64,000 nt of DNA. Origin: Botryllus schlosseri (taxonomy: Eukaryota). The notes under the pieces are model-generated. The model searched no databases. It saw only the letters and a program-made list of their open reading frames with translations, and was not told where the DNA came from. The stretch covers positions 6,200,001-6,264,000 of the forward strand of contig CM119375.1 of the NCBI GenBank assembly GCA_051294905.1, in the 5' to 3' direction. Numbering within the stretch: position 1 is the stretch's first letter; each line of letters opens with the position of its first letter. Below are positions 27,094-56,116 of the stretch, in pieces. The position numbers and the translations under genes were made by a program.

Positions 27094-27330
27094 GTTTAGA
27101 ACAATGCCGGTTTTTCGATTTGAAGGCTATTTCGGGGTGGTTTCATTGCCTTGATAAAATTGCAATATATATATTGAGAATCAACGCGACAGTAGCTTTC
27201 TAATAAGATCAACTTTATTTACCTTGAGCGATAAGTGTCGTCAGCTGTGGGAGTAGAAATTATGTTGCTTTCATATTTCTGAGCTGTGATTTCCTCTGAG
27301 CAAGCAAGCGTGACGACGGGTGTTGCATAT

Positions 27331-27917
27331 TTTAACGAAATATATTGGTATAACGCCATTTTAATAATGGTTAATAAGGAGTTGGTAAACCTTACGTAAT
27401 TCCCTGAACTGAGACCTGATAAGACCTTTGTGAGTCGTCTATTTGTCGTGTGAATTATAGATAAAAAGATAAATAAATCGTACGATGTTTGGTGCATTTC
27501 GAGATATACGTGTAATACCACGTAGAGACATTGATGCATGCATTGGTGATTATTAGCTGACTCGGAAGTCGACAAACATTCATGATTATTAGCTGATTCG
27601 AAAGTCGATATACCTTCATAAGTATTCCGCTGATTGGGTGAAAAATATATCGCATTTTGGGCCGTACGTGATTGGCAATAAAAGTACAAGTCGTGGAGAC
27701 AGAAACAAAATATATTCGTCAGTGTGATCCATCAAATTCGTGTGCAAGAGACAGGCTTCGTGGTACGTCAGCCAACAAGGTCGTACGGCGTGGTTACGCC
27801 GGTCGTCGAACGCAAGGGAACACGCAGCGAATCGTAACCGCAACCTTCTGGAGTCAATAATACATCTTGGAGTCAGATATACAATTATACAACTACAAAC
27901 ATTCGCTCTGCGTTATA
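27331..27917 (+). repeat. 5' LTR
   Basis: TTTAACG...CGTTATA; about 12 substitutions versus the 3' LTR counted by eye; internal ~36-bp tandem duplication; AATAAA near 27677. Confidence 0.97.
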
Positions 27918-27934
27918 TGTTGACCTCCGACGTT
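27918..27934 (+). promoter_or_regulatory. Primer-binding site, degenerate tRNA-Trp complement
   Basis: TGTTGACCTCCGACGTT directly after the 5' LTR, versus the tRNA-Trp complement TGGTGACCCCGACGTG. Confidence 0.75.
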
Positions 27935-28507
27935 CAATTAATCAAGACCGACCGGCCGACCGAAGACAATCAATATAAAAATTCGCCTTGCACGACGATG
28001 AGAAGGATCAATCAGCAATCAGTGACGAGGACATACATCAAAAGTCATAGCGACGTTCTCGCAGAAGAAACGACAACGAACAGCGCCTACTCAGAAGAGA
28101 CGAAGGATTGTAACATATTTGAAGTTAAGTAGCTTTCCCGGACAGGGTTTTGCATTTATTTCAATTTCAGTGACGGCGTTGTTGAATGGAACTGTGTCAA
28201 TTGTGGAATTAATTGTTTAGTCATGTCAGAGTATCGAGCTATGTGGTAAAATTGTGTTGTTTGGGAAGTTTTCATGTCCGTTGAACAGGTTAATTATAAT
28301 TAGAAATTGCTAGTAAGTTTGTGTGAATTCCGTATTGTTCATTGTAATTTTGTTTTTCAGTGATATAGCCATTATTTCGAGGTAAAGTCTGAGTTGGCGT
28401 TCCTGCCGGAATATTCGTCTGTGTGCGGTACGACATTTGCGTGTACGGGCAACGAAAAGGTAATCATTTTCAATTCTCGCATGAGCAATTGCTATTCACT
28501 GTCATAA

Positions 28508-29413
28508 ATGAAAGTGAAAAGTAGTGACAACGAACCTCTGGATAGATTCACCTCTAGCGAGATCACTATCAATCGACATTTTAACAAGCAGGAACCGGCG
28601 CTGCATTTCAGATTATTAGAACATCAGCTCGAGGGCGAGAATGTACGGTCGCAAAAACCTAAATATCTCATTTTGTTGAGGAACTTGAATGACGCACACT
28701 TCGCCGCTATCGATGGAAGTATTCCTGGCCCACATGATCCTAATTGCTACGACTTGCTTAAAAAGGTTCTGTTGGACCGTTTTGATGTTCCGATTAATCG
28801 GAAGTTGAAAAACTTTTATGCCGAGGCAGTTGTGGGTATGGATCCCAGAGATTTGCGATCGCAGATTAATGAGTGAGCGGGTGCCGATAATTCACCGCAT
28901 ATGGCGGGGTTCAAGCGCCACATGTTCTTGCAGTACTGCAGGCCCGACATCGCTTTCGCATTACGTGGACATTATAGAGATGATTTTGATACAATGTGTC
29001 AGCGCGCGGTTGCGCTATGTGGGGGGTCAAATTCGGGTAATTACTCCATTCAAACTAATGAAGTAAGTGTGGCAAAACCGGAAAAGCAGCGCGCGGTTAG
29101 AGCTGAGGAAGATACGCAGTTAATCGAGTCGATAAGTAAGCAACTTGCTAGGATGGAGAAGCAAATGGCGGAATTGAAATTGGATGATGTTAAAGTGCAA
29201 CCAAGTGATGATAGCAATAACTCTTTGAACCATTCTCCCATGACGCAGAATAGGGCTGAGTCAATCCGCAGAGGTACGCGATATTATCGGGGCGGCAACG
29301 TTGGTCCAAGAGGTGGCAGTAATACCGATTGGGTATGCCAGAATCATCACCGATATGGTGATCGGGGCTTTTCAGCCTATCGTAAACGTAAACGTTTTGA
29401 TCGTAGTTCATGA
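28508..29413 (+). pseudogene. gag: Gypsy gag with in-frame TGA at 28874-28876
   Basis: FNKQEPALHFRLLEHQL...YDLLKKVLLDRF...VGMDPRDL...FLQYC pattern of CsRn1-type gag; C-terminal CQNHHRYG knuckle-like motif; the two ORFs share one frame. Confidence 0.8.
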
Positions 29414-31445
29414 CTACATGGCAGTGGTTTCTACCCAAGTGGTCCAAGTATTAATTCTTTTGATTTCGAGTATCTGGCTTATGCGTTTGATAAATTAAAT
29501 GGTTTGAATTTCTTGAGTGAAAGTGGGTCCATGATTTCTAATTTACCAGCTAGTGAACATGTGATTCGGAACTATACGCCGAAATGGCAATTTCGGGGAG
29601 CAAATGGTTCCGTGATTAATGCGTATGGCACTAAGACTTTGATGTTGCAGTTTGGTGATAATGAACCACTTGAATGTCCTTTTGTAATAACCGGAGTGTC
29701 GAAGTCAATATTGGGCTGGAATTTCATGAAAAAGCATAGGTTGCTTTTAGATCCAGAATTGGATGAACTCGCGACTCGTGACCGCAGTACTGTAATAAAA
29801 TTGTCTCAAAACAAATTTTCGTGTCTTGTCGCGCATATCGACGCGAGTGAACGCACACCATACGCTGAGTTACTTAAAGAGTTTCCGGAGATCTTGGTCC
29901 GGTAACCTGTTAAACGGCGCGAAATGAAACATGTCATGCGAATAAAAACGTTCGGTTATCTAAAATCTCCGAAGCCACGTTCGATCCCAACCCAGTATTT
30001 GTTAGAAGTTCGGCGGCAAATTAAAGATATGTTGCAGCGCGGTGTAATTTCAAAATCGGATTCGGATTTTTGCTCGCCGATCGTGTGTGTTCCAAAACAG
30101 AGTCACGTTGAGGGTAAACCTCCCGGTGTGCGGTTGTGCATCGATTATCGTTATTTGAATTCGCATGTGGCTCCTCAGTGTTATCCATTACCGATTATTG
30201 CGTCGATGCGTACACAAATGGCAGGGGCCAAGGTATTTTCCACTCTGGACATAGCAAGCGCGTACCAAAACATTGAGGTGGCGGAGTGGCGGAGTCAGAC
30301 CGCCATTTGACAGCGTTTTATGCGAAGGAAATCGGTAAACTTCAGTACAATGTGTGTCCGTTCGGTTTTCGGTCCAGTGGGGATCAATGGTGTAAGCTGG
30401 CTTACGAGTTGCTTGGGGACATTCCTAATACTTTTCTGTATTGTGACGATATTGTGGTAGCGACGCCTGACGAGAAGTCTCATTTGGAGACGTTGCGAGT
30501 AATTTTTGAGAAACTAAAGAGTGAGTCCCTTTCGTTGTCTATTGAGAAGTGTAAGTTCGGAGCAGAGTCAGTTCGCTTTTTGGGGTTTTTGATCGACAAG
30601 GATGGCATCAGACTAGATCCCAGACGAGTTGAGGCGATTGGGAAATTTCCAGTGCCAAAGACTATTCGTGAGGTGAGAAGGATGATCGGCATGATCAACT
30701 ATTATTCGAGAAGCATCAAGAATTGCTCATCAATTATGCAGCCGTTGTATGATTTATTAAAAGGAACAAATGCTCGGAGTAAGCTCAAATGGTCCAGTGT
30801 GGCGCAGAATGCATTTGAGCAGATCAAATCAGCTTTGATAGATGCAGCGAGATTGGCTTTTCCGACATTCAAAGGACCTATACAGCTTGTGACAGATGCA
30901 AGTCAAGTTGCGTTGGGCGCAGTAATCAATGAGTACCAGAATGGGAGATTTGTACCGCTGGCTTTCTTCAGCAAGAGTTTAACTGAGTCTCAGCGAAAAT
31001 GGTCAGCTGTGAAGAGAGAGACGTACGCTGTATACATGGCTCTGCAGCATTTTCGAGATTGTTGCATGGGCAGGTCAGTGAGCCTTGTCACGGACAGTCA
31101 GGTGTTGGCTAAGATGATTATCAATCCGAAGGAATGTGCTGACCCAGCTATGTTTCGGTATCTTGAGTACATTAATTACTTTGTGAACAAAACTACATGT
31201 ATCCGCGGTATTTTCAACTCCGTTTCCGATTGTTTGTCCCGTGTTGAGATAAATGAATTTGTCGTACCAGAGGGTTTGAAGCCTGATTTTATCAAGCGTA
31301 TTGCAGCGGAACAGTTGCGAGATAAGGAATTAATAGAATTCCGAAAGAGCAATTTGGCTGAGACTGGTTTGAAGTTAAGAGTGTTGAAGTTGTCGGTAGA
31401 TCCCAGAAGTCGTCTGTAATTCCACGAGTTTGGGTTCCACGTCAT
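29414..31445 (+). pseudogene. pol: Gypsy pol: protease, reverse transcriptase and RNase H (disrupted)
   Basis: Degenerate protease site FLSESGS; RLCIDYRYLN, FSTLDIASAY, LYCDD; RNase H LVTDAS and TDS. Stop at 29903-29905, 8-bp duplication frameshift at 30278-30295, and a frameshift/stop near 31417. Confidence 0.93.
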
Positions 31446-34268
31446 ATGAGACGAGAATTGTTTGAACATGTACATTCTCTTTCGCACCCCGGAATGCGCG
31501 CGACGTTGGCATTGGCCAAACGGCATTACGTTTTCCCCGACATGGACAGGTGGTTACGAGAATCAGTGAGGGCACGTCCGATGTGTAACAAAAGCAAAAT
31601 TATTCGTCATGTACGCTTCGCATTAAAACACGTACCGCGACGTAGTCATCGCAATGCTGACATTTCAATTGATATCGCGGGTCCGCTTCGTGAAACGGAA
31701 GATGGTAATCGATATTTTCTTATCATCGTTGATCGTGTAACAAATTACACTAATGCAGTCCAGAGTTGGATCAATTGTAATTTGTAATGTAATTGAATGT
31801 AATTAATTACATATTTCAATGTAATTGTAATGTAATTGTAATTGAAGCATTTTTATTTTGTGTAATTGTAATTGTAATTGTAATTTGACAAAAAGTTTGC
31901 TCAATTACAATTTATATTACATTAAATTGCTATTGAGACCTGACAAGCACAACATAAAATAATTGACTTATAATGCATTCTCTTTAAATGTCGACAAGGA
32001 ATTTGGTGGATCCATTCGCGGAAGCCCTTGACTGCGCCCTTGCGGGTTAAGTTTTTTATTTTTACCGCTATGCTGGCCTCGGCTGCCATTGTATACAATT
32101 ATTAGATTACTAACCATCGGATGGATTCGCAACACGTGACTCACGATTGAATACGCCGAGAAGCGAACTGCTGAGTCGGCTAAAAGCAGCAGAATTGATA
32201 GTCCCATAGCTAACGATCCAAGCGTCGAAATTTGATATGTATGGTCCTAATCGAAAGCTAGTGTCGCACTGATTCCGCAATAAAAGTATATTTCCAGGCA
32301 ATGGTACCATCCCAAAATAGTCGTGAAAGTCTGGGAATCGGCATTGTTCTGAACAATCGCTGGGAGTAATTGGTCATTGTTGTGGTCATGCTGCTGCGGC
32401 GCTCTCACTTTTCAGAACAGTCGGCCTTAAACGGCTATTTTGGAGCAGTTACATTGCCCTGACGAGATTTTAATTTGTATTTTCGGAATTAGTGCATCAA
32501 TAGCTTACGATAAAGACCAGATGTATCAAATTTGGACGCCTGAATCGCCAGCTCTAGGACTACAAAGTTTGCTGCTTTTAGCCGGCTCTGCAGTACGTTT
32601 GTCGGTGCATTCATCCGTGACTCACATCTTGCGCATCTATCCGTGGGTTGGCAATCTACAATACGATTTCAGATCACGATGCTGCATCGTTACTTCGTCT
32701 GGCTAACTAACCAGACCACTGGATATTATATAACGTCTTATCTGACAAAGCACGGTTTTGTTTTCACCCCTCATCCTAATTCCTACGTCCCTCGATAAAA
32801 ATAATATTATTTCTTTAATTATATACTATATACGCAAATCCAACCCGTGCATGATTCCAATACTTTTTTCAACGACATACTGCATACTGGAATAGTTCGA
32901 AAACGTTTTTCTTTTATTAATTACCGGGTATTTGCGTATCATGAATGAAACATGAATACTTGAATTGTTGTTAATTACGACGCTACGGTTGTCAAGGAGC
33001 ACGGTTGAATTTATCATTATTCAATTACATGTTCAACAGCAGCAATTGTAATTGTAATTGTAATGTAATTGAAGCATGCAAGGAGTAATTGTAATTGTAA
33101 TTGTAATTTGATATTTTTAGCATGGAGTAATTGTAATTGTAATGTAATTGAAACATGCATGAAAGTAATTGTAATTGTAATTGTAATTGAACTGAAATAA
33201 TGTAATTGATCCAACTCTGATGCAGTCCCCATGAAAAGACAAGATACTGACACGGTGATCCGTGCTTTGATAAATGGTTTTGTGAAGGATCGTGGAGCGC
33301 CCATGGTTATAAGGTCCGACCGTGGCTCAGTGTTTACATCGTATGAATGGGAAAAGTTCATGTCGGTCCTTGAATGTAAACACTCATTTTCGTTGGCACT
33401 TTCGCCACAGCAGAATTCGATCTCCGAGACGGGGATCCGGCGAATAAAGCGCGGTTTGCGGTGCGCTAATAATCCCGCGGCCTGGGATCGGCTATTGCCT
33501 TTTGTGATTTTGTCATTGAATGCCTCTGTGCGAGAGGGATATGATTATTCCGCGGCGGAAATGACGTATGGGGAAAATGTGCGGTTGCCGGGAACCTATT
33601 TTGAGTATGACCCCAATAAATTCAAGAATAGTCAAGCGGAGGTACTGTGTGATGTACGGGAATTTTTCGAAAACTTGAATTTCAGTAAGTCCAACATCCG
33701 GACGAATGTCAATGCATACGTTCCGCCGGATCTCATGGTTTGTGCACATGTTTATGTAAAAAACGAGAGGGGTAAAAAGACCGCTTTTGATTTCTGGTAT
33801 GTGGGTCCTTACAAGGTAATCGAGAGATCGAAATCAGGGAAGGCCTTTACCTTGTTAATCAAGGGAAAGGAGAAGGCTGTGTCGATTGACAAGCTGAAAG
33901 TGTGTTACTTTCCTCCATTTGATGTAGATAACGACATGTTTGATGATTTCGTTCAGCAGTTTCCGCCCGTTGATGCGGACAAAGTGGTACTAAACTCCGC
34001 GGTAACTCCGGGTGACGCGTGTGTAATTTCGTCTGGTAGTGATGGCAGCGAGAGCGACTGTCCGAGTAGTATTGGTAGCGCGTCCCGAGAGCGTATCCCT
34101 GAATGCTTACCTGTTGATGTCGATCGCGATAATAATGGACATGAATCCAAATCTAAGACCCAAACATGTAATGAAGGCAGAACTCTCAACGAGTCAAGTC
34201 CAAGATATACGTCGAGAGGGAGACGAATTGTTAGACCAAGACATTTGAATGATTACGTGTTGCATTAA
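31446..34268 (+). pseudogene. Gypsy integrase split by a MITE (segments 31446-31760 and 33228-34268)
   Basis: HVHSLSHPG zinc-finger region, ISIDIAGP, IRSDRGSVF, ...SISE..., GPY motif YVGPYKV. Removing the MITE plus one TSD restores TNAV-PMKRQD. Confidence 0.93.
31761..33219. mobile_element. hAT-type MITE with GTAATT/AATTAC arrays, inserted in the integrase
   Basis: TIR CAGAGTTGGATCAATT...AATTGATCCAACTCTG; perfect TSD ATGCAGTC; homologous in opposite orientation to 41648-43381. Confidence 0.95.
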
Positions 34269-34667
34269 ATCACGTAGAATAAAGATATGCGTGATGAAAA
34301 TTGTGCTTAGTACAGTGATATGTTATGTAAATGCAAGATTGCTGCATCATGTTGTGACTCCTGTCGTAGAACGTAAGGATGGGGTCACCGAAGCCCGTTG
34401 CTCAAGTATGTGTTGTAGTAATAAATGCTGATATCAAAATATTAGGCTCGTGTAGGCCGGTTATGCTTCACGGAATTGTGCGTCATATTTGAGATGATCA
34501 CGGCAGAATTGTCGTTGAGTTGCCATAAGCCCTCTGTTGTTGCGATCGGACAACATGGATTTGGTAAGAATGGTTGCTGTTCCCGCTGGACGGGTTGACA
34601 GTAATAATGAGAAAGTAGAAGAAGAAGCGATTGATGACAGTGAATAGCATGTTCTGTGGGTCTTGAG

Positions 34668-35176
34668 TAGGGCTGGGCAAAATCGAGTACCTGAGTGATT
34701 CGATTCTGAATCACGTAAAATGCTTCGAGTCGAGTCGAGTATTCGAGTATCACTCATTATGACGTCACAACACAATGTACTATGTAAAAGTTTAAATATG
34801 TACCTTTTATGTCACAACGAAGAACATAATGCCTGTTACCCGTCACGATACTTCGGTATGTTTTCGACCATACCGACTTCATTGCACTTCTTGACAATGT
34901 TGTGGAACGATCATGACTTCGGAAATGTGTTATTTCCAGTAACGTTCGTAGCTTTGTACTATGTCTATGATGCTACGACACGGCAAATCAAGGTTTCAAG
35001 GCTTCCTCAGTGGAAAATATTATCAAAACTATAATTCTCGTTAGTTCATTAACTTTCAGTTGCGAGGAGCGTACAATTTCAGTACTCTAAAAAATCGTCT
35101 TTTACTACTCGACTCGAATCATTACAATTAATACTCGATTCAGATTCGAGTACTCGAATCATTGTGCCCAGCCCTA
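34668..35176. mobile_element. hAT-type MITE in the 3' non-coding part of the Gypsy element
   Basis: TIR TAGGGCTGGGCA...TGCCCAGCCCTA; perfect TSD GTCTTGAG; ACTCGA/TCGAGT subterminal repeats. Confidence 0.92.
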
Positions 35177-35710
35177 GTCTTGAGGCATGATTGCTGAAGG
35201 AAATATGGTGTTGACCTTGCATACACGTAGATGGTATTCGTCAGTGCATATAGACTGGTTTAGACTGGTTACGTCTGTGAATTGCATTGCATTTTCTAGT
35301 TTGTGTTGCTCTTTATTATACATTTTCATTAATTTGTTGTTATTGCATGCGAAGTGATCTGTAATGTCACGGTTGTAACGCTTTTGTGCTGGTTGAATTA
35401 TGTATTTTATTTCTTTGTTTTGTTAGAACGCTAACTATTTTTGATCTGAGGTTCAGTTGCCAGTAGGACGGAACGATGATATTGCGAGTCGTTCCGAGAT
35501 GGTAATGTAAAATAGGGTGTCCGAATGCCACGCTTGGATGGTATTTCGTTTCATTAGTTTACTTTTTCCCCTGCATATAAAATCGTTTCCTGTCTCCAAT
35601 CCCTAGGATTAGCTTCAGTCTTTATGATTAGCCCCAGTCCATATGTTGTATAACCCTAGGTATGAGATATTCACCAATATATTCGTTTTTTTTTTACACC
35701 AAGTTCTTTT

Positions 35711-35725
35711 GGTAGGAAGGGGGAA
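35711..35725 (+). promoter_or_regulatory. Polypurine tract
   Basis: GGTAGGAAGGGGGAA immediately before the 3' LTR. Confidence 0.9.
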
Positions 35726-35727
35726 CT

Positions 35728-36314
35728 TTTAACGAAATATATTGGTATAACGCCATTTTAATAATGGTTCATAAGGAGTTGGTATACCTTACGTAATTCC
35801 CTGAACTGAGACCTGATAAGACCTTTGTGAGTCGTCTATTTGTCGTGTGAATTATAGATAAAAAGAGAAATAAATCGTACGATGTTTGGTGCATTTCGAA
35901 ATATGCGTGTAATACCACGTAGAGACATTGATGCATGCATTGGTGATTATTAGCTGACTCGGAAGTCGACAAACATTCATGAATATTAGCTGATTCGGAA
36001 GTCGATATACATTCATAAGTATTCCGCTGATTGGGTGAAAAATATATCGCATTTCGGGCCGTACGTGATTGGCAATAAAAGTACAAGTCGTGGAGACAGA
36101 AACAAAATATATTCGTCAGTGTGATCCATCGAATTCGTGTGCAAGAGACAGGTTTCGTGGTACGTCAGCCAACAAGGTCATACGGCGTGGTTACGCCGGT
36201 CGTCGAACGCAAGGGAACACGCAGCGAATCGTAACCGCAACCTTCTGGAGTCAATAATACATCTTGGAGTCAGATATACAATTATACAACTACAAACATT
36301 CGCTCTGCGTTATA
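35728..36314 (+). repeat. 3' LTR
   Basis: Same length and termini as the 5' LTR; followed by CATAT. Confidence 0.97.
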
Positions 36315-40375: not shown

Positions 40376-40415
40376 GAGATAGTTGACCTTCAACTGACTA
40401 ACTGGGCAGTTTGTA

Positions 40416-41039
40416 CAGTAGGGTTGTTCAAAAAAAAACTTTTTTTCCAAATCTCACTCGCCTAGTGACTAAATCGTCAGGTTGTCCAAAAAAACGATGC
40501 ACACCAAATTTGACTCAATTCCAACCAGTAACGGCCGTGCAATCTTGAATTGAAATTTTTAAATTATTATTAAAAATAAAAAAATAAAAATTCTCCATTT
40601 TTCTGTCAACCCCATGAAATTGTTGAGCTGTCTTCAAAGACGTTGCAAAACAAATTTGAGTCAATTCCGACCAGTAGAAGCGGGTTTATGTGAGTTTTTC
40701 GTTGATAAATCGCGGATTATCCACCAATCAAGGATAATCCGAGAAATTTCAACGAAAAACTCCAATAACTCCGTTTCTACTGGTCGGAATTGACTCAAAT
40801 TTGTTTTGCAACGTCTTTGAAGACAGCTTAACAATTTCAGGGGGTTGACAGAAAAATTTGAGAATTTTTATTTTTTTATTTTTAATAATAATTTAAAAAT
40901 TTCAATTCAAGATTGCACGGCCGTTACTGGTTGGAATTGAGTCAAATTTGGTGTGCATCGTTTTTTTGGACAACCTGACGATTTAGTCATTAGGCGAGTG
41001 AGATTTGGAAAAAAAAGTTTTTTTTGAACAACCCTATTG
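40416..41039. mobile_element. Near-perfect 624-bp foldback (palindromic) MITE, TA-flanked
   Basis: TA|CAGTAGGGTTGTTC...GAACAACCCTATTG|TA; the two ~300-bp halves are reverse complements with only scattered mismatches. Confidence 0.92.
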
Positions 41040-41647
41040 TACAGGTCTGGCTATGATGCTTTTTCAGTCTATGAATATCGTAAATATTTTTGAAATTATC
41101 TTATACACTCACCAGCCCTGTGCGGTATGCCGATCAGAAATATAAACTGTAACGTACGTTCAGTCACTGCCTAGCCAACGACCACAGATTATATTTTGAT
41201 TGGATATTCTGCAATGTAAAGTATGGCTGGCCGAGATGCTTGTCAGCTCAGTCGCAACCCTGCGTTGCTTGTAATCACTTCCGATGTATAGAGGCCTACC
41301 GCTGAGGCCATGTCAATATAAACCACTGGTTTACAGATTGAAAATTTATTTTTTGGCTAATTAACGTTCACGCCCATATAAAGGTACTAGTCGCAAAATG
41401 TTAACCATAGTCAACTCTCAACACTCTGAAAGAAAAGAGTCTGTATTCACACCCAAAGGTCAGAAAGGGAGGTACACAAAATCAGAACTTTACTCAGAAT
41501 TATATCGCTGTCATACGCGTGTGGTGCCTACCTTCCAACGTTACTACGTGCATCCATAATTTTGATTAAAATGTTGTACTTGATTTATACCGCGGTATAA
41601 GTCTGAGTTAGGAACTGGTGTCCTGTGTCATGGCTGTACATTCACAC

Positions 41648-44365: not shown

Positions 44366-45911
44366 TCAAGCGTAATTCACATCGCCCACAAATCCATTAT
44401 TTTTTCCTCGCTTCGTTGGAAAAGGATGGTCCTCTCCAAAAATGTGCATCGAATACGCGACGTGCACCCAAGCCGATTTTTTAATGATCGGCCAGACCTT
44501 CGCCGTCAGGAAATTGATGTCCACCATGTATTCGTCATTTCCCTTATATTCCGCGATGAGTTGTCTCATGTTGGGAATAGAATTTCCGTAACCTCCCCAC
44601 ATCTGACCGTTGATCGGAACCTTAGAATGGTTTGGTTGATCCCGCATGACATGAAATTTCCTGCCGGATTTCAGCCATTCTACTGTGGCCAATCGTCCTC
44701 TTTCAAGCGTACGATAGTCGACGTCTAGTATCGTGAAGTACTTGACGGGTTCGGTGGCGATAAGGAACCGACTGGACATACGATTTCCGATAGAGGTACC
44801 CGTCATATTTACGAATTTGACGTTGTACGAGCAAAGCTCGTTTGCGATTTTAGGGTCCACGGTATTATGGACATACATCCATACCTTCCAGCCTGGATAT
44901 ATCGTGAACACCCTTTTCACGTTGTCAAGCGCACCATTCACATATCTCAATTTGTTTCCATAGAAAGAATAAATTAATGCGGGTCGAACCCAAGTACGAT
45001 TTGCAATACTATGCATTTGGCTCAAGTCCAAAGAATACCGCTCTTGCGGATCAGTGCAGCGGTCGAAGTAAAATTCGATGCCGTCCCTAATCCAATTTGG
45101 AAAGTCACACAGACGGAAACCGTACGGGACCTCATTCTCCCCACAGTACTCTCCGTCTTGGTTTCTTTGTCCTATTTTAATCGCCAGCGATTTTGCGGGG
45201 AAAATACCAGTGATATTCTCTTTTTTCAGTATTTGATTCCATTCCAATCGATCGACCAGTTCCCGGTTGCGAGAAAGTAATATTTTCGCAAATTTTCTAT
45301 TAAATGCAATGCCGAATTTGCCGGACACAGCGCCTTCGCATACCTCGTCTGTCTTGATATCACAATCTTTCTGGGAACTGTGAAGGGTAGCCGAATGATA
45401 TAAGGACAGAAATTGACGGTTGTTTTTCTGCACGTGTTTGACTAAGAATTCCCTCCAATTCGACATGAATATCATCTCACTGTCCACAAGGAACAATATT
45501 TCGTAGCTGCTGTCTGTAAATATCTCCAATATATGTCTCATTTGTGATAATTGTTCTGGTAGTATTGTTATTTCATTTCCGTACCATGTATTCAGCAAAC
45601 CGTAAGTGTAGGTGTTCTTATTCTGCGGGAAAACATATATATTATATATCCACATCTGGAATTTCGTGATATCTTCTTACTACAGATGCGGTGAATCTGG
45701 AGTATCCTATTCGTTTAGTTAGGGAGACGGCAAACATGATATCTCCTGTATTTGCTCTCTGTTTCTCCGACTCCAACTCAATTACCGAGTCGAGCAGGTC
45801 ACCATCAGAGGTGGTCGAACACATCCGTGAAAGGAAGAGACTTTAGACGATGAGGTATATGACAATAACAAATGAAACCGATAATATTCCCATCCTCTTC
45901 GGTAATTTCAT
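44366..45911 (-). pseudogene. Two-domain glycosyltransferase-like type-II membrane protein, copy 1 (disrupted)
   Basis: ATG 45911, MKLPKRMGILSVSFVIVIYLIV*SLFLS signal anchor with TAA at 45845-45843; frameshift from a 7-bp duplication at 45636-45649; then a 429-aa open frame with FLVDSE (DxD-like), YSFYG, YPGW, EWLKSGRKFHVMRDQP, GQMWGG and PFPT...FVG. Confidence 0.8.
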
Positions 45912-46902
45912 ATTGTATTGCGTCATGTCTGATAAGGATCTGTGAATACAATTTGAGGTCTGTAAGTTTATTTGAATTTACCGGAACGTAAGATATGGTA
46001 TGGAATAGTCCGACGTACATGAAGTTTGTGCCCTTGAAATGCCCTGCGTTAATCAACTCTGAGATCCTCATAAGCCTCATACGTTACGCAGGTGACTGGT
46101 GGAAACCCGGGCGTTCCAACAAGTTTTGCGATTTCTTGAAATCCTCATCATCATTTGTATAACTTTCACTATAAATTTACTCGACCATTCTAATCGAGGT
46201 ATTAATTGAATCGAGAATTATTAAGCAGAAGTGGTCAAACTAGTCGAAAATCCAACTCACATCCTAGAAGCAGACGTTGTGACGTATAATTCTATCCACC
46301 GAAAGAAGCAGTGGTTTTCTAAGCAGGCCAAAACTACTTCGAGTTCATAAATTCAAATGCGCCTACTTGGATATTACTCAAGGAAGTAGGTAATTATGGT
46401 TATAGTTATAAAACTCTCGTATGGGCTTACCATTCTGGAAACTGACGTTTGAGGATGATTTGAAGAGCTGGATTCGTGCTACTACATACCAGGAGGTCGC
46501 ATCTGCAACAACGTAAGGAATTCGGCCGCATCCGGAGGCTCCTATATGTATTGTATACATAGCTTTCAATAAAACATCCATTGTAGTAGAATATTTATTG
46601 AACCCGAAGATTTTGTGGGTGCCTCATTTCAAGAGTTAACGGTACACTAAAGGGCAACATTTAGTGAAAAACTCGCCCGTGCACACTGCTCACAACACTA
46701 TAATGACAATATGTTCACTGCCATTGCGCAAGTCAGATCTGTGTTTCATTCAAAAGTATTGGAGTCTATCATTATTTAATTGCCTAAACCTATTCTATGC
46801 AGACAAAATGACTTTCTCTATAACTTACAAATTTGTCATTACTTTGTTTTCTTTCGTGTTTGTATCTTTATTTTCAAATTGCGTTGTGACTATGGTACCG
46901 TA

Positions 46903-47089
46903 GGTTGCCAGTAAATTCGGCCCTCGGTATATTTGGCCCCCTGTAAATTCGGCCTCGGTAAATTCGGCCCTTGATCTATTTTGCATTATAAATGCATTTA
47001 ATACGAATTATCATTCTCATATATGGAAGTTTTACGTGTTGTGGGTGGGTAAGGGGGACATTAGGGTTGAAGTTAAGGCATCCCAAGAC
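46903..47089 (-). repeat. Truncated inverted copy of the right end of the 8834-9929 element
   Basis: GGTTGCCAGTAAATTCGGCC TIR followed by sequence matching the reverse complement of 9730-9929. Confidence 0.85.
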
Positions 47090-47340
47090 AATATCGGCCA
47101 GGTTCAAAGGACAATACCATGAATACCATAACAACCCGTAACGGCGCTGCTGTGAAATCCCATTCCAGAAAGCTAGTTAACAGTGGGGAATATTTTAAGT
47201 ACAATACGAAGTCTACGCTTTCGGCCCTGATCATACGGGTGAATACATAGCTTACGGCAACTTTCCTTATAAAAACGACGCACGTGGTTTACCATACAAA
47301 CTGTGATTTGTCTACGATGGTATTTCATGCCGACCTACGA

Positions 47341-48699
47341 GATTACCTTAAATTATGACATTTAACCGTACATACAATCGCAATTGATCTATGATATTGA
47401 TAAGCAATACAGACTGACATTTCTAAATTCGCTCATGCACCATCCCTGGTTCATACATTCTCCCTTCAGCATCGGGGTTTTCTAAAGTTAAAATGAATGG
47501 CGACGATAACGTTTTCAACTCGCCGGTTGAATCGCCGGTTTTGAAAAATTACAATGAAACATACGAGACACTAAAAGAGGTGTGACTAAAACTCAGAGAA
47601 GGGTGACAATTGGGGATACGCTCTCTAAAGAAAAATACCAGACAATACAAAGAGATTGCATCAATCACCGTGTTCATTGTAACTTCACACGAACCATTGG
47701 AGGTAGAATGAGAAACCGCTATTTTTCGAAATGTATACAACGGAGGGGTGATATGGTTAGGATGCTGCTCAGATAACGAACGCGTGCTCAGTAATTGATT
47801 TTAAATTGTAATACCTCATTAGCCGTCAGGGTATGTAAATAGAAATATGGAGAACGCTAAATGATTAATGGTATTTCTATGCTGATCTTCATGAACTGCT
47901 AGTTGCGGACATATGTCTGGACCCGAAATTACGCAGATTGAATATTTATTGTTTCGACATAGGGCTACAGCAGGGGCAAGGCAGACACCAGCAAAGCCGC
48001 AGCCGTGTCCATGAACAAAGATTATGCTGCATAGAGGATGGGCATGTCACATCAGTCAACAATGTATTTGCAAAAACCCCTTCATAAAATGTCTCAAGTC
48101 ATTTAAGTGTAATAACGAAATTGGTACCAGATTACCTTAAATTATGACATTCAACCGTACATACAATCGCAATTGATCTATGATATTGATAAGCAATACC
48201 GACTGATATTTCTAAATTCGCCTATGCACTATCCCTGGTTCATACATGCTCCCTCCAGCATCGGGGTTTTCTAAAGTTAAAATGAATGGCGACGATATCG
48301 TTTTCAACTCGTCGGCTGAATCGCCGGTTTTGAAAAATTACAATGAAACGTACGAGACACTAAAAGAGGTGTGGCTGAAACTCACAGAAGGGTGACATTT
48401 GTGGATACGCTGTCTAAAGAAAAATACCAGACAATACAAAGAGATGGCATCAATCACCGTGTTCATTGTAACTTCACACGAACCATTGGAGGTAGAATGA
48501 GCAACCGGTAATATTCGAAGTGTATACAACGGAGGCGTGATGTGAAGAGGATTCTGCTCAGATAACGAACGCCAGCTCAGTAATCAATTTTAGATTGTAA
48601 TGCCTCATTAGCCGCCAGGATATCTAAATAGAAATATGGAAAACGCTAATTGATAAATGGTATTTCTATGCTGATCTTTATGAACTGCTAGTTGCGGAC
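47341..48699 (+). repeat. Direct duplication of a ~570-bp unit (47341-47910 and 48130-48699)
   Basis: Both copies run from GATTACCTTAAATTATGACATT to GAACTGCTAGTTGCGGAC; 219-bp spacer; visibly diverged. Confidence 0.9.
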
Positions 48700-48914
48700 T
48701 AGTTGAAACGGTAGTGGAGCTCTCGGCTAACCAGTCCTCTCGTACGTGAGTCGCAGATTGCATGTTGCAACTACGTGAAGACCAGGGCCCGGAATTTATA
48801 CCTGGTATCAATTGAATGATATTGTCTCATTGATTCCGAAACCATCTATAATATTTATAATAATTCGATACCTCAAAATGAAATGTGAGAAAATGTGGCG
48901 ATGCAGAATAAACA

Positions 48915-49050
48915 TTGTATCCATAGTCAATAGTCGTTGGCGCTACATGGATCGTAAACAAAAAACATGACACATATCCAGAAGATTCTAGGAAACGTTC
49001 GATTCGACATCATCCAAAAGATCGCCTTGTTGGGCACTGTGCCAGTGTAC
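48915..49050 (+). mobile_element. 3' fragment of an RLE-class non-LTR retrotransposon (R4/NeSL-like)
   Basis: IVVGA... then HIQKILGNVRFDIIQKIALLGT matches the typical C-terminal VVGALG...IQKxALLGT motif; contains a frameshift. Confidence 0.6.
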
Positions 49051-50054
49051 AGTACATATTCTCCGAGAGGCCTTGACTACTGGCCACTAGACCAAAATTA
49101 TATACATCAGCGACTGAATGACACCCTAATTTCTGTAACTTCGATGCTTCATGTTCAATCATGTCTACCTCTGCTCTGCAACCTTCGCCAATTCTTCATC
49201 TACCGCAATTCTGTAACCTGACCTCTGGATGTAGGCTACTGCAAAGGAATAACAATTTGACTGTATTAGTGAAATTTCAAAATTTACTACAATCTCGCCA
49301 TTATTCTTTGGGGGCAGTTTGCTCCCGGATTATGTGTGTATTTACCAGTTCTACTGTGAATAAAGAAAATAATATTATTAATAATGTAAGGCCACCAGCA
49401 TCGCCAAAATAACAGGAAACGTAAAAGTTAAACAGTAAGATAGACTTCGTTGTTCAAAATGATTGCGCATGCGCAGTGAACTATACGAGGCTTGCATAAT
49501 GTATATACAATTCAATCTGGCGCACCGAATGATGACCCAGTAATGGGTAATGTGACAACGGCAAAACATTGAAACTAAAGACAGTACAGGTCAAGGGGCA
49601 GCTTTCATAGCGAAAATAGTGTATATTTCCGTATATCAGGGGTGGTACACGGGTGGAAAACATCTTTTTGCTAAGCGTGTGTAGTAGAGAGTGTTTAGTA
49701 CAGTGTATATACTTCCTCTCTATGTATTTTTGGGACAAAAACCTACCAAAATTTTAGGCATAAATGTATATAGCGTAGACCTAGGCTCAAAGTTTCAGAA
49801 TCGGACGGACGTGGGTGCGGTTAAATTATCCTGCTTTTCTGTCTGATTCAAGGTTTCTATAGTGTGGCACCCGAAACAATTACAATTTAAGTAATGCCTG
49901 TCTTCGATTTCCAGCCCCAATGGAAGTAATAATCACGAGCTTCTCCAAACTACAGACTCGCGCACAGCATAGCGTAGTATTATAGTCATTACCGACCGCT
50001 GGATCACTATCGATAATCTTTCATTTTCAGACATCGTTGTCCTCTAAATGTGAT

Positions 50055-51416
50055 ATGCTAACAGGGGGAGCATTCCGAACGTTGAGCCTGATATGTGCAG
50101 CTCTTGTTGTAACTTACTGCTGTAACAGGAAAGGCATCTTAAAGGCACTTTTAGCCATGAATATGCATTCAGATGGACAACCACAAAATCTAATAATGCT
50201 TGGAGTTCGACTAAGGAAGGAAAAAGGATACTCCAGTTTCACTGGCTCCGTAATAAAAAAATACCACAAGATACATAGTGAAAATCTGTACATAGTACGC
50301 CACATCGCCCAACACAGTGACCATTTGCTACAGAAATGGTATGGACCAGACATCAACATCGTCGTATCAGATTCAGATACTGGATTGATGAAACTCCTCG
50401 TTGAAAGGTTCCTTGAAACCGAATACAAGATATTATTCTTAATCGACAGCGACATGGTGTTTCTCCAAGGCTGGGCTGATTTCATCACCAAGCAAATGAT
50501 TGAACTTGATGTACCCTTACTGTCACTGTATCACTCAGCTCATATGCATGATTATTCGAATGACTGTCCATTTGATACCGGGGATCTTTGTATAGGAAAT
50601 CTATCCAGTACACTCGGGATAGCTATCTCAAGGAAAATGGGTAAAGCAATCGTATCCCGATATTTGGACTTATTACAAAAATATGAGTGGAACAGGATAG
50701 CGGCAAAAAATGATGCACTGGCTCTTTATCCGAAAAAATCTCTTGTGATGAAAATTGGACAAGTGCGGCAGGATGAAAAATTCTGCGGAGAAAACGAAGT
50801 TGCTTATCGATTTCCAGTATGCCAACTTCCTCAATGGGTACGAGATGGAATCGAATTTTATTTTGATCGCTGTACTAACCCCGAGGAACTATATGCTCCT
50901 GGGCAGTCCCTTGTGCGAATAAATAACGAGCAACGGTTGTGGGTACGCCCTGCGATCTCCTACAGTCTATACGGCACTCAACCAAGATACACGGGTGGAG
51001 CAGTAGAGAACTCAAAACGTGTGTTCAGTGTCTATCCTGGATGGAAGATTTGGATGTATATTGATAATACAGTCCCAATACACATCACTGAGCTACTATG
51101 CGAAAACAATGTTTTATTTGTCAATATGACAGGTAGCAACATCATAAATCGAAGATATTGGCGGTATCTAATTGCATCCGAGCCTGTGAAAATGTATGCA
51201 GTTCGGGATATCCACTCTCGATTACATCACAGAGGCAAAGCCGCCGTGGATGAATGGATAAAATCAGGAAAGAAATTTCATGTCATGAGAGATCACCCCA
51301 ATCTTTCTTCTTTGCCGATCAACGGGGGCATGCGGGGACGTACCGGTGATGCGACAACAAACAAGAAAAAAAATATTCCCAATTACTGCAGCGAAAACGA
51401 GTGCATCACAGACTAA
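50055..51416 (+). CDS. Two-domain glycosyltransferase-like type-II membrane protein, copy 2 (premature stop near the C-terminus)
   Basis: Acceptor-like ttttcag at 50030, ATG 50055, hydrophobic anchor TLSLICAALVVTYCC; FLIDSD, SYSLYG, GAVEN, YPGW, WRYL, RDIHSR, AVDEWIKSGKKFHVMRDHP. Homology to copy 1 continues in frame past TAA 51414-51416. Confidence 0.8.
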   Translation: MLTGGAFRTLSLICAALVVTYCCNRKGILKALLAMNMHSDGQPQNLIMLGVRLRKEKGYSSFTGSVIKKYHKIHSENLYIVRHIAQHSDHLLQKWYGPDINIVVSDSDTGLMKLLVERFLETEYKILFLIDSDMVFLQGWADFITKQMIELDVPLLSLYHSAHMHDYSNDCPFDTGDLCIGNLSSTLGIAISRKMGKAIVSRYLDLLQKYEWNRIAAKNDALALYPKKSLVMKIGQVRQDEKFCGENEVAYRFPVCQLPQWVRDGIEFYFDRCTNPEELYAPGQSLVRINNEQRLWVRPAISYSLYGTQPRYTGGAVENSKRVFSVYPGWKIWMYIDNTVPIHITELLCENNVLFVNMTGSNIINRRYWRYLIASEPVKMYAVRDIHSRLHHRGKAAVDEWIKSGKKFHVMRDHPNLSSLPINGGMRGRTGDATTNKKKNIPNYCSENECITD

Positions 51417-52360
51417 ATATTTCTGCGAGATGTAATCTGGAAAATAGCACAAGAATCAGCATGTACCCACGGTTCATTTTCTCCGCATACGCTTGGAAGT
51501 GATAGCACTAGGCTAAAACAAATAATAGTAAAATTATCTTTGGTAGAATTGACTTTCATTAGTTTTCATGCCCAGTATGTTTTATCTGTGTGTATGTCGA
51601 TTTTGATAACATGTCGCCAAAGCTCCCGAGCACAGTGGTTCTCAGTATATAGTAGTCGTACCACCAGCAGTGGTAGCCTATACGCGAGACATTTCTTGTT
51701 GGTTCACGGGTTGATTTTCATTGCGGTCATCAATCTAATACTGTGGATTCTGTTATACTTGGGTATCTCTAAATCGCAACGGTAGCTCAATTCCTCATCC
51801 CCGTGATGAGTCGTTCTTCCATTTTCACGATATTTGTGGGTAAGGACTGTCTAAACTAAGAGGACTCGAGTCACTTAGCAAAAATGTCTTGAATTCACTC
51901 GGAATTAGCATTTTAGTAATTGGTGATCTGTAGTAGTATAGCTAACAATACGGAATACTTTACGCCAGTGCTTTTCAACCTGTGTGACGGTTCGCACTCG
52001 TGCCAATGAAAAAAATTGCAGTGCGAATGACGAAGGTGGTGCGAATAGTGCGAATGAAAATCCGGATCGAGTGCGAATGAAAACAGTGATTAATTGTTAA
52101 CTTTTCTGACGTGGAATAATTCAAATGAACCTAATAGGAAGTTTAAGATCAGAGTAACTTTTGTAGTTGCGACGCAAAATTTTCAACTTTGTCGCGGAGT
52201 TGCGCAACCCTGTCGCAGACGTGATGTTGCGAGTTGCCGGCAACTCCGGTGTGCATAGCCTCGTCGCAGACAGGCGCGATTCTCTCGTTTTATCGGGTCG
52301 CGAGCTCAGTGTGCAGAGGCCTCGACGCACCACTCATCGTAGCCCTCACAAGCCGTAGTG

Positions 52361-54990: not shown

Positions 54991-55683
54991 GTTGTTAAGT
55001 AGGCCTATTTTCATCTACTTTTTGTATAACAATTTTCGATTAGTTTGTGCGAATGAAATTTATTTTACAAAAAAATTGCGTACGGAGCACAAAAAGGTTG
55101 AAAAGCACTGCTTTACGCGAAACGTCCTGTTGCTTGTCGTAAAGTTCTTCGTACCAGATATACTCAATGCAGGGTAGTTAGTCTCCTTTTTACGCAGCAC
55201 ATTAATACCAGAATCGATAACCTTCCTTTACATATTGATTCTGTTGTATAGGTAAATGCGCCCTCCTCCAACAGAATATTATTCTAAATCACTCATATTA
55301 TTCACATTTCTGAGGCTATGGTTTCTTGTCAGACATCACTTGAGAATACCGGTTGGCCTACTCATCGACTTCGACCTAATCAAAGAATATCGAGATTAGT
55401 GCAATGCTTAATCGTTGTTGTAACGTCTATATATTCCATTCATATGACCTACAACCTCTCATAGTACTACAATATAGAGATTTGTGAGACCTGCGGCTCC
55501 AAAACTGACCTCCAGGGCAAATCACATGAACACGATTCCTGAGTAAAATACACTGAACAGTGAACCTGAACACGCACTGACCAGCCTTTAGACTCCTTAG
55601 AGGTTGTTTACATTTCGAATGAATTTGAGCCCGTAGAACAACAGATCATAAGCAATCTGACGATGTTGCTTAGGAACAGGGCA

Positions 55684-55771
55684 TGGTATGGTATGGTATG
55701 GTATGGTATGGTATGGTATGGTATGGTATGGTATGGTATGGTATGGTATGGTATGGTATGGTATGGTATGG
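55684..55771 (+). repeat. (TGGTA)n pentanucleotide array
   Basis: About 17 perfect units; forms the left subterminal region of 55677-59490. Confidence 0.95.
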
Positions 55772-56116
55772 AAGAATGGTATGGATCGATATTTTGGTAT
55801 GGAATATGGAACAATGCAAGTATGGTATGGAATGGAAGATTTTAATCTATGGTATGGAACGACATTTTCATACTTCCATACTTTGGTGTTTTATACATTT
55901 TATCGTGATCTGTGCAAGCTTCATGAAGCGTACGTTGTTCGTTGTTTACGGAATACGATCGATTTTCCTATGTGTGAACGTGAACTATTGAACGCTCTGT
56001 AGGAACAAATACGCGCTTATGCAACGGTTTTAGGAGCACTTGGAATGACATGATTTTGTGATGTAATAATGACAACAGTAATGTTGATCCGATATTCTCT
56101 CGAGTCTAGGCACGAC

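Follow-up and report, generated by a model that had tools for sequence, protein, structure and literature searches.

A divergent pair of two-domain genes

The subject of this study is a divergent pair of glycosyltransferase (GT)-like genes, here called copy 1 and copy 2, in a 64,000-nt stretch of contig CM119375.1 of Botryllus schlosseri; the whole of this stretch is referred to below as the window, and all coordinates are window positions. The pair corresponds to the two longest open reading frames (ORFs) of the window, located at 44.3-51.6 kb and transcribed away from each other, with 429 codons on the minus strand and 459 codons on the plus strand (Table 1). Pairwise protein alignment of copy 1 with copy 2 revealed 47% identity across 363 residues (E = 2e-125), a level of divergence at which synonymous sites are saturated, and the first methionine codons of the two copies, as defined by homology, lie approximately 4.1 kb apart. 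The ORF list and this level of identity confirmed what an earlier reading, made from the letters alone (hereafter the sequence-only reading), had proposed, namely two diverged paralogues set back to back at that distance. The motifs quoted in it could all be read in the translations: D-S-D/D-S-E, LSLYHSA, a Cys-bracketed segment, S-[LF]-Y-G, H-x-M-R-D-[HQ]-P, and G-[GQ]-M.

Relatives of copy 1 were sought by a word-indexed search of 5.8 billion proteins. This yielded four proteins (P0001-P0004) of 508-606 residues, all from Logan assemblies, with 42-57% identity to copy 1; they match at E values of 1e-112 to 1e-163, and chance can thus be dismissed. Two of these four full-length relatives were recovered from one sequencing run, indicating that the family is multi-copy elsewhere too. 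As the pairwise identities within the two-domain family all fall between 42 and 57%, the paralogues must be old, and so must the family in its host lineage. The complete two-domain architecture was found in just about 5 other sequences. Clustering by pairwise identity, carried out on sequences without taxon labels, placed the window copies, P0001-P0004 and the fragment P0007 in one cluster, which joins the eukaryote-type and multi-domain members (43-53% identity) before it joins the bacterial-type group of 215-residue proteins. The hydropathy scan located the maximum within the first 30 residues in copy 2, P0001-P0004 and P0008; in copy 2, the Kyte-Doolittle value for a 19-residue window peaks at 1.75 at residues 7-25. 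The N-terminal membrane-anchor-like segment of the sequence-only reading was thus found again in copy 2 and the four full-length relatives, while in copy 1 it is interrupted by a stop. P0004 has in addition a Cys-rich stem at residues ~35-140, between the anchor and the first GT domain, with three C-C...C-x-x-C repeats; it contains 24 cysteines versus 8-11 in the other intact members.

Searching with the four full-length relatives (tblastn) showed that both genes extend beyond their long ORFs. Homology to copy 1 runs upstream of the ORF in another frame, and translation of that upstream frame identified two breaks, one frameshift and one in-frame stop, the latter falling within the anchor-like hydrophobic segment. 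Homology to copy 2 runs past the end of the ORF in the same frame; here, translation disclosed one in-frame stop and, beyond it, a tail that can still be recognised although it is degenerate and that lacks a stop codon where one would be expected. The earlier description of each copy as an intron-free coding region therefore stands in part: neither gene requires an intron or shows signs of one, yet both frames are broken.

The C-terminal domains were further compared with those of all fetched proteins (274 domains); the comparison covered 38 columns whose conservation among the 272 domains other than the two copies reaches 90% or more. Deviations per family domain at these columns have a median of 1 and a 95th percentile of 4. 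Copy 1 deviates at 8 of the 38, sharing 4 of these changes with its closest relative P0001 and having 4 to itself. Copy 2 deviates at 4, all unique, and 8 more columns are absent beyond the end of its ORF. In pairwise alignment, the D-x-D (DxD) motif of the copy 2 C-terminal domain reads D-I-H, its second aspartate being replaced.

The simplest reading of these breaks and of this decay is that of two pseudogenes, of which copy 2 would be the older or the more decayed. Function at the window locus has probably been lost, since copy 1 has no continuous frame across the anchor and first strand region, and copy 2 lacks one DxD aspartate as well as its C-terminal end. The sequence-only reading had held the pair to be the best candidate in the window for an undescribed system; not being intact, the two copies make poor candidates for an active one in this genome.

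Predicted folds of the two domains

The AlphaFold model of the C-terminal domain, obtained from an 18-sequence alignment (A1), reached a predicted local distance difference test (pLDDT) score of 92.6 and a predicted template modelling (pTM) score of 0.89. Foldseek returned 337 PDB matches for this model at E <= 0.001, with GT-A enzymes leading. The top matches were glycogenin (GT8), the Skp1 galactosyltransferase GlaT1 and mannosylglycerate synthase, at template modelling (TM) scores of 0.55-0.59 and 10-14% identity; GT78 was also among them. The predicted fold is clearly GT-A, without a close solved relative, and looks most like that of glycogenin, just remotely so. Among the predicted viral structures of BFVD, the top five Foldseek matches were much closer (TM 0.76-0.87; 22-26% identity) and comprised proteins from a metagenomic Mimivirus, from an Aureococcus anophagefferens virus (containing tetratricopeptide repeats, TPR), from a metagenomic iridovirus and from an uncultured tailed phage, and a 539-residue protein. 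The motifs of the family are an invariant D-x-D, an H-x-x-R-D-H-P-x-H segment, and a G-G-M-W-G loop. Both DxD aspartates are invariant in A1 and kept in copy 1.

Neither the two window copies, whole or as single domains, nor the 18 family members matched any Pfam, NCBIfam or PHROG model, the GT8 profile of Pfam (Glyco_transf_8) included. The sub-threshold library matches were spurious (T4 beta-glucosyltransferase at 15-16 bits, with a cut-off of 27, and DUF5395), and sequence and profile searches of the PDB gave matches at chance level only (DltD, E = 0.16; HPRT, E = 0.14). A literature search with the motif strings produced nothing relevant, and no activity is reported for members of either domain family in the libraries searched.

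The N-terminal module is much rarer, as only P0001-P0005 and P0127 match it among all fetched proteins. P0127 (L060 3918-6248) is a 776-residue protein combining an FkbM methyltransferase, the N-terminal module and a GT29 sialyltransferase-like domain. It is encoded on a 9-kb Tara Oceans scaffold with dense, short genes on both strands (SET-domain, ubiquitin, GNAT and EamA genes among them), a gene content that would be characteristic of a giant virus. In the alignment of the module (A2), three cysteines are invariant. The Cys-rich stretch, which had been taken for a linker between the two domains, is conserved together with the N-terminal domain in P0127, a protein devoid of the C-terminal domain, and hence belongs to the N-terminal module.

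The AlphaFold model of copy 2 residues 45-300 (pLDDT 81.1; pTM 0.85) matched in the PDB GnT-I and POMGNT1 (both GT13), WrtF, KfiA, PmHS2, TarP and the GT domain of LH3, with TM scores of ~0.5, best Foldseek E values of 7e-9 to 1e-6, and 9-12% identity. On this model, the module may be described as a divergent GT-A domain of GT2/GT13-like character, with D-S-[DE] as its motif. The DxD position reads D-S-D or D-S-E in both window copies, P0001 and P0003, and D-S-N in P0002. In P0127, the DxD position reads D-T-D and an aspartate pair follows the second strand, both among the GT2-like features that this protein keeps; it scores 23.9 bits against the Pfam GT2 profile (PF00535; cut-off 23.3). The animal-type N-terminal domains are devoid of this pair after strand 2, and the window copies match neither the Pfam GT2 nor the Pfam GT13 profile, so that their likeness to GT13 is one of fold only (TM ~0.55). 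Both domains are thus GT-like, as the sequence-only reading had anticipated, in that the two models match GT-A enzymes in the PDB; in agreement with it as well, no Pfam match assigns either of them to a characterised metazoan family.

Distribution of the C-terminal domain and setting of the locus

An exhaustive phmmer search with copy 1 over 1.84 billion cluster representatives returned 3192 cluster-level matches at E <= 1e-3 and 1652 at E <= 1e-10, nearly all of which cover only copy 1 residues ~225-426, that is, the 200-residue C-terminal domain. A profile search collected 1310 proteins at E <= 1e-10, which include named members from Naegleria, Acrasis, Prymnesium and Nannochloropsis, together with many standalone proteins of ~215 residues, some of them labelled "protein O-GlcNAc transferase" by JGI. 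In species-representative prokaryote genomes, one bacterial member used as query detected 24 loci, in Planctomycetota, Acidobacteriota, Bacteroidota, Cyanobacteria, Acinetobacter, Desulfovibrio and others. A search with a 5-sequence alignment identified 32 IMG/VR contigs encoding relatives, 3 of which are giant-virus metagenome-assembled genomes (MAGs). As the sequence-only reading had indicated, the second domain belongs to an uncharacterised family of patchy occurrence, with members in bacteria, giant viruses and some eukaryotes; phages are found to have it as well. The C-terminal domains of the named eukaryote and virus members share 33-53% identity with those of the window copies. One named animal member was found, in the clam Mercenaria mercenaria (LOC123552226; XP_045197646); it has a single exon and a hydrophobic N-terminus, and profile comparison of its first 260 residues with the N-terminal module of the window copies showed no similarity.

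The surroundings of one member and the fusions of others point to glycan synthesis. The Pedobacter gandavensis member lies in a polysaccharide cluster with GT4, GT11, three GT2, WbsX and ABC-transporter genes, and long environmental proteins combine the C-terminal domain with FkbM methyltransferase, GT61, LicD, RXYLT1/GT47 or IRX15/GXM. The Acinetobacter piscicola member (L019 5533-6837) is not in a polysaccharide locus; it is fused to N-terminal TPR repeats, and its neighbours are genes for a RecN-like (SMC_N/AAA) protein and for a SpoU methylase. This fusion hints at a protein acceptor, and TPR fusions probably explain why family members have been named O-GlcNAc transferase or TPR proteins. 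Six proteins (P0010, P0023, P0043, P0076, P0083, and P0105) carry the C-terminal domain twice in one polypeptide. In one giant-virus MAG (L049 5887-12160), a relative is located ~3 kb from a fused ATP-sulfurylase/adenosine 5'-phosphosulfate kinase gene, resembling 3'-phosphoadenosine 5'-phosphosulfate synthase, and may thus belong to a sulfated-glycan context.

At the locus itself, the GC content (0.40-0.42) equals that of the whole window, and gene packing is not dense, the two copies being the sole long ORFs in ~28 kb. The spacer between them contains a pair of direct repeats and a short tandem repeat (Table 1). Elsewhere in the window, a long terminal repeat (LTR) retrotransposon is bounded by 300-nt direct repeats that are 97% identical and 8397 nt apart; the ORFs within this pair are gag-like, reverse transcriptase/RNase H and integrase, in a Ty3/gypsy-like order, and the pol region is spread across several ORFs, which gives the element a degraded look. 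An inverted repeat, situated in the part of the window with the lowest GC content (0.35), has 191-nt arms that are 97% complementary and 250 nt apart, and overlaps a second, 170-nt pair; it may be an element like a miniature inverted-repeat transposable element, or a foldback element.

Table 1. Location of the gene pair, its domains and other features in the window
Feature	Position	Strand	Evidence
Copy 1, whole gene, candidate start Met to stop codon	44366..45911	-	ORF list; tblastn with P0001-P0004, giving two abutting high-scoring segment pairs in different frames
Copy 1, N-terminal GT-A module including Cys-rich C-terminal segment	45011..45842	-	Alignment A2 (copy 2, P0001-P0004, P0127); tblastn bounds; fold by the copy 2 model
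Copy 1, C-terminal GT-A domain, DxD kept	44369..44992	-	AlphaFold, Foldseek, BFVD, cluster-level relatives
Copy 2, whole gene, first ATG to end of homology	50055..51557	+	ORF list, tblastn, translation
Copy 2, N-terminal hydrophobic segment, putative signal anchor	50055..50123	+	Kyte-Doolittle
Copy 2, N-terminal GT-A module and Cys-rich segment	50169..50936	+	AlphaFold, Foldseek, homology to P0127 residues 303-537
Copy 2, C-terminal GT-A domain, decayed	50943..51557	+	hmmsearch envelope, pairwise alignment, conserved-column counts, tail translation
Spacer between the divergent copies, ~4.1 kb	45912..50054	.	No long ORF; 300-nt direct-repeat pair and short tandem repeat
Spacer direct repeats, 300 nt each	47336-47635 and 48125-48424		94% identity, 789 nt apart
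Spacer 16/31-nt tandem repeat	46911-46971		
LTR retrotransposon	27330-36026	+	Direct repeats and ORFs (see text)
Inverted repeat	40412-41043		Complementary arms (see text)
(GGTAT)n microsatellite	55680-55774		~19 units

Interpretation and comparison with known systems

Overall, we think it probable that both loci hold decayed members, most likely as pseudogenes, of a multigene family that is old and lineage-specific; its intact members would be type II proteins of 500-600 residues with two GT-A domains in tandem. In such members, an N-terminal signal anchor would place the catalytic part, stabilised by disulfides, in the lumen of the secretory pathway; each domain would bind a nucleotide sugar via its DxD motif and a divalent cation, and the two domains would add two sugars successively to the same glycan, as in other dual-GT enzymes. 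Routing to the Golgi and bifunctionality, both put forward in the sequence-only reading, are suggested only by the signal-anchor-like segment, the conserved cysteines and the two GT-A folds; the glycan-synthesis surroundings and fusions of the relatives were counted in favour of GT activity.

Several points weigh against this interpretation. Copy 1 retains 15 of the 15 invariant columns of A1, DxD included, and its decay, if real, would have to be recent or mild. All breaks come from one assembly, in which assembly errors would look alike and may play a part. The similarity to PDB enzymes is remote (TM 0.5-0.6; 10-14% identity) and gives no indication of donor, acceptor or stereochemistry, the GT8-like and GT13/GT2-like resemblances being too distant to tell retaining from inverting chemistry. 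Lastly, the putative signal anchor was called from the hydropathy scan alone, and P0004, apparently intact, is devoid of the D-S-[DE] motif, so that the N-terminal domain may not be catalytic in all members.

It appears rather unlikely to us that both genes are instead intact and active, coding for two working dual glycosyltransferases, with the stops and the frameshift being errors of assembly or sequencing. Such errors would fit the complete set of invariant C-terminal residues in copy 1, the presence of just one or two breaks in each copy, and the location of the copy 1 frame change in low-complexity sequence; however, the pair carries three independent breaks, in copy 2 a DxD aspartate is replaced along with other near-invariant residues and the tail is degenerate, and each copy shows 4 unique changes at highly conserved columns where the family median is 1. 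We give still less credit to a non-enzymatic family, in which one or both GT-A-like domains would be pseudoenzymes serving as carbohydrate-binding or scaffolding modules. The absence from animal-type N-terminal domains of the GT2-type nucleotide-binding aspartate pair, present in P0127, and the P0004 sequence speak for it, whereas the invariance or near-invariance of the C-terminal DxD and its surrounding motifs over 272 domains argues for catalysis there at least. Finally, a foreign origin of the segment, as contamination or as a recent insert from a protist, a bacterium or a giant virus, is highly improbable: the genes have no introns, beyond the small family, both domains have their nearest relatives on environmental contigs, one of them the giant-virus-like Tara Oceans scaffold, and relatives occur in IMG/VR contigs, but the locus has the GC content of the window and no dense gene packing, a eukaryotic LTR retrotransposon and microsatellites lie on the same contig, and the copies have diverged for long and are both decayed. 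Giant-virus insertion or contamination was rejected on base composition and gene density.

Apart from the favoured reading of the two copies as decayed members of an old family, a horizontal origin of the family itself is plausible from the comparisons made here. Acquisition by this route would fit the patchy distribution, the intronless genes (in the window and in Mercenaria), and the nearest relatives on environmental or giant-virus-like contigs, while the host-like base composition, the deep paralogy and the decay of both copies were counted against a recent transfer. A broader scenario may be put forward tentatively, as a possibility that we would not yet favour: the C-terminal domain would represent a major unnamed GT-A family (>3000 clusters at 50% identity) that, in one marine-invertebrate lineage, was captured from a protist or a giant virus and fused to a rarer GT-A module, the sole detected outside relative of which is on a giant-virus-like contig, giving rise to an animal-specific dual enzyme for a glycan outside the standard metazoan pathways.

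What is new here is an unnamed GT-A family and a new architecture of two GT-A domains, both domains being outside curated families and belonging to the GT-A superfamily by fold. The family of the C-terminal domain is large and widespread, with members in protists, bacteria and at least one mollusc as well as in phages and giant viruses, yet the standard libraries of domains miss it. Thousands of proteins, among them portions of the multi-domain glycan enzymes found in marine algae and their viruses, could be annotated once the family had a name and its donor and acceptor were identified. The animal-type family with both domains would contribute a glycosylation step confined to one lineage and, possibly, a case of gene transfer into animals. 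The interest lies in the family, the locus in the window itself appearing to be dead, a relic.

When compared with characterised enzymes, the C-terminal domain comes nearest to glycogenin and other retaining GT-A enzymes of GT8 (PDB 1ll0 and 3u2w; GlaT1, 6mw5), which gave its best Foldseek matches (E ~1e-6) and with which it shares the GT-A fold and a DxD after the fourth strand. It differs from them in its modest TM score and identity, in the lack of any Pfam GT8 or PDB sequence or profile match, and in the H-x-x-R-D-H-P-x-H and G-G-M-W-G motifs, which are specific to its own family. Its true sequence relatives are the proteins of Mercenaria (LOC123552226), Naegleria, Acrasis, Prymnesium and Nannochloropsis and the "TPR" protein of the Aureococcus virus; they are without the N-terminal module of the window copies (shown for Mercenaria), and none has a known function. 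The N-terminal domain resembles GnT-I/POMGNT1 (GT13) and GT2 and GT45 enzymes (PDB 1foa, 5ggi, 5z8b, 8vh8, and 6h1j) in its GT-A fold and in having a DxD-like motif where the corresponding strand ends, but is set apart by low similarity (TM ~0.5; 9-12% identity), by the absence of a Pfam GT match and by the loss of the GT2 aspartate pair in animal-type members.

With respect to architecture, two GT-A domains in one polypeptide, acting in turn, are also found in LARGE1 and in the Pasteurella heparosan synthase PmHS2 (PDB 8vh8). LARGE1 is a type II membrane protein. It is described as a dual glycosyltransferase whose two GT domains act in turn (PMC9746966). The likeness of the window family to LARGE1 and PmHS2 is an architectural analogy only, as no homology of the domain pairs was found, and the data do not imply a polymerising activity for it. 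The C-terminal domain was also considered as a counterpart of domain 2 of the chlorovirus protein A064R, which is described as cation-independent and as having GT10-like relatives (PMC9614988); this was rejected on description and fold only, the published description being unlike that of a DxD-bearing GT-A domain. A064R itself was not among the close BFVD matches, the only one of a possibly fitting size being a 638-residue entry with a TM score of 0.51. What is shared with proteins of the A064R type (PMC9614988) is the style of building, in that the environmental relatives P0014, P0022, P0025 and P0127 fuse domains of the window type with FkbM methyltransferase and other GTs.

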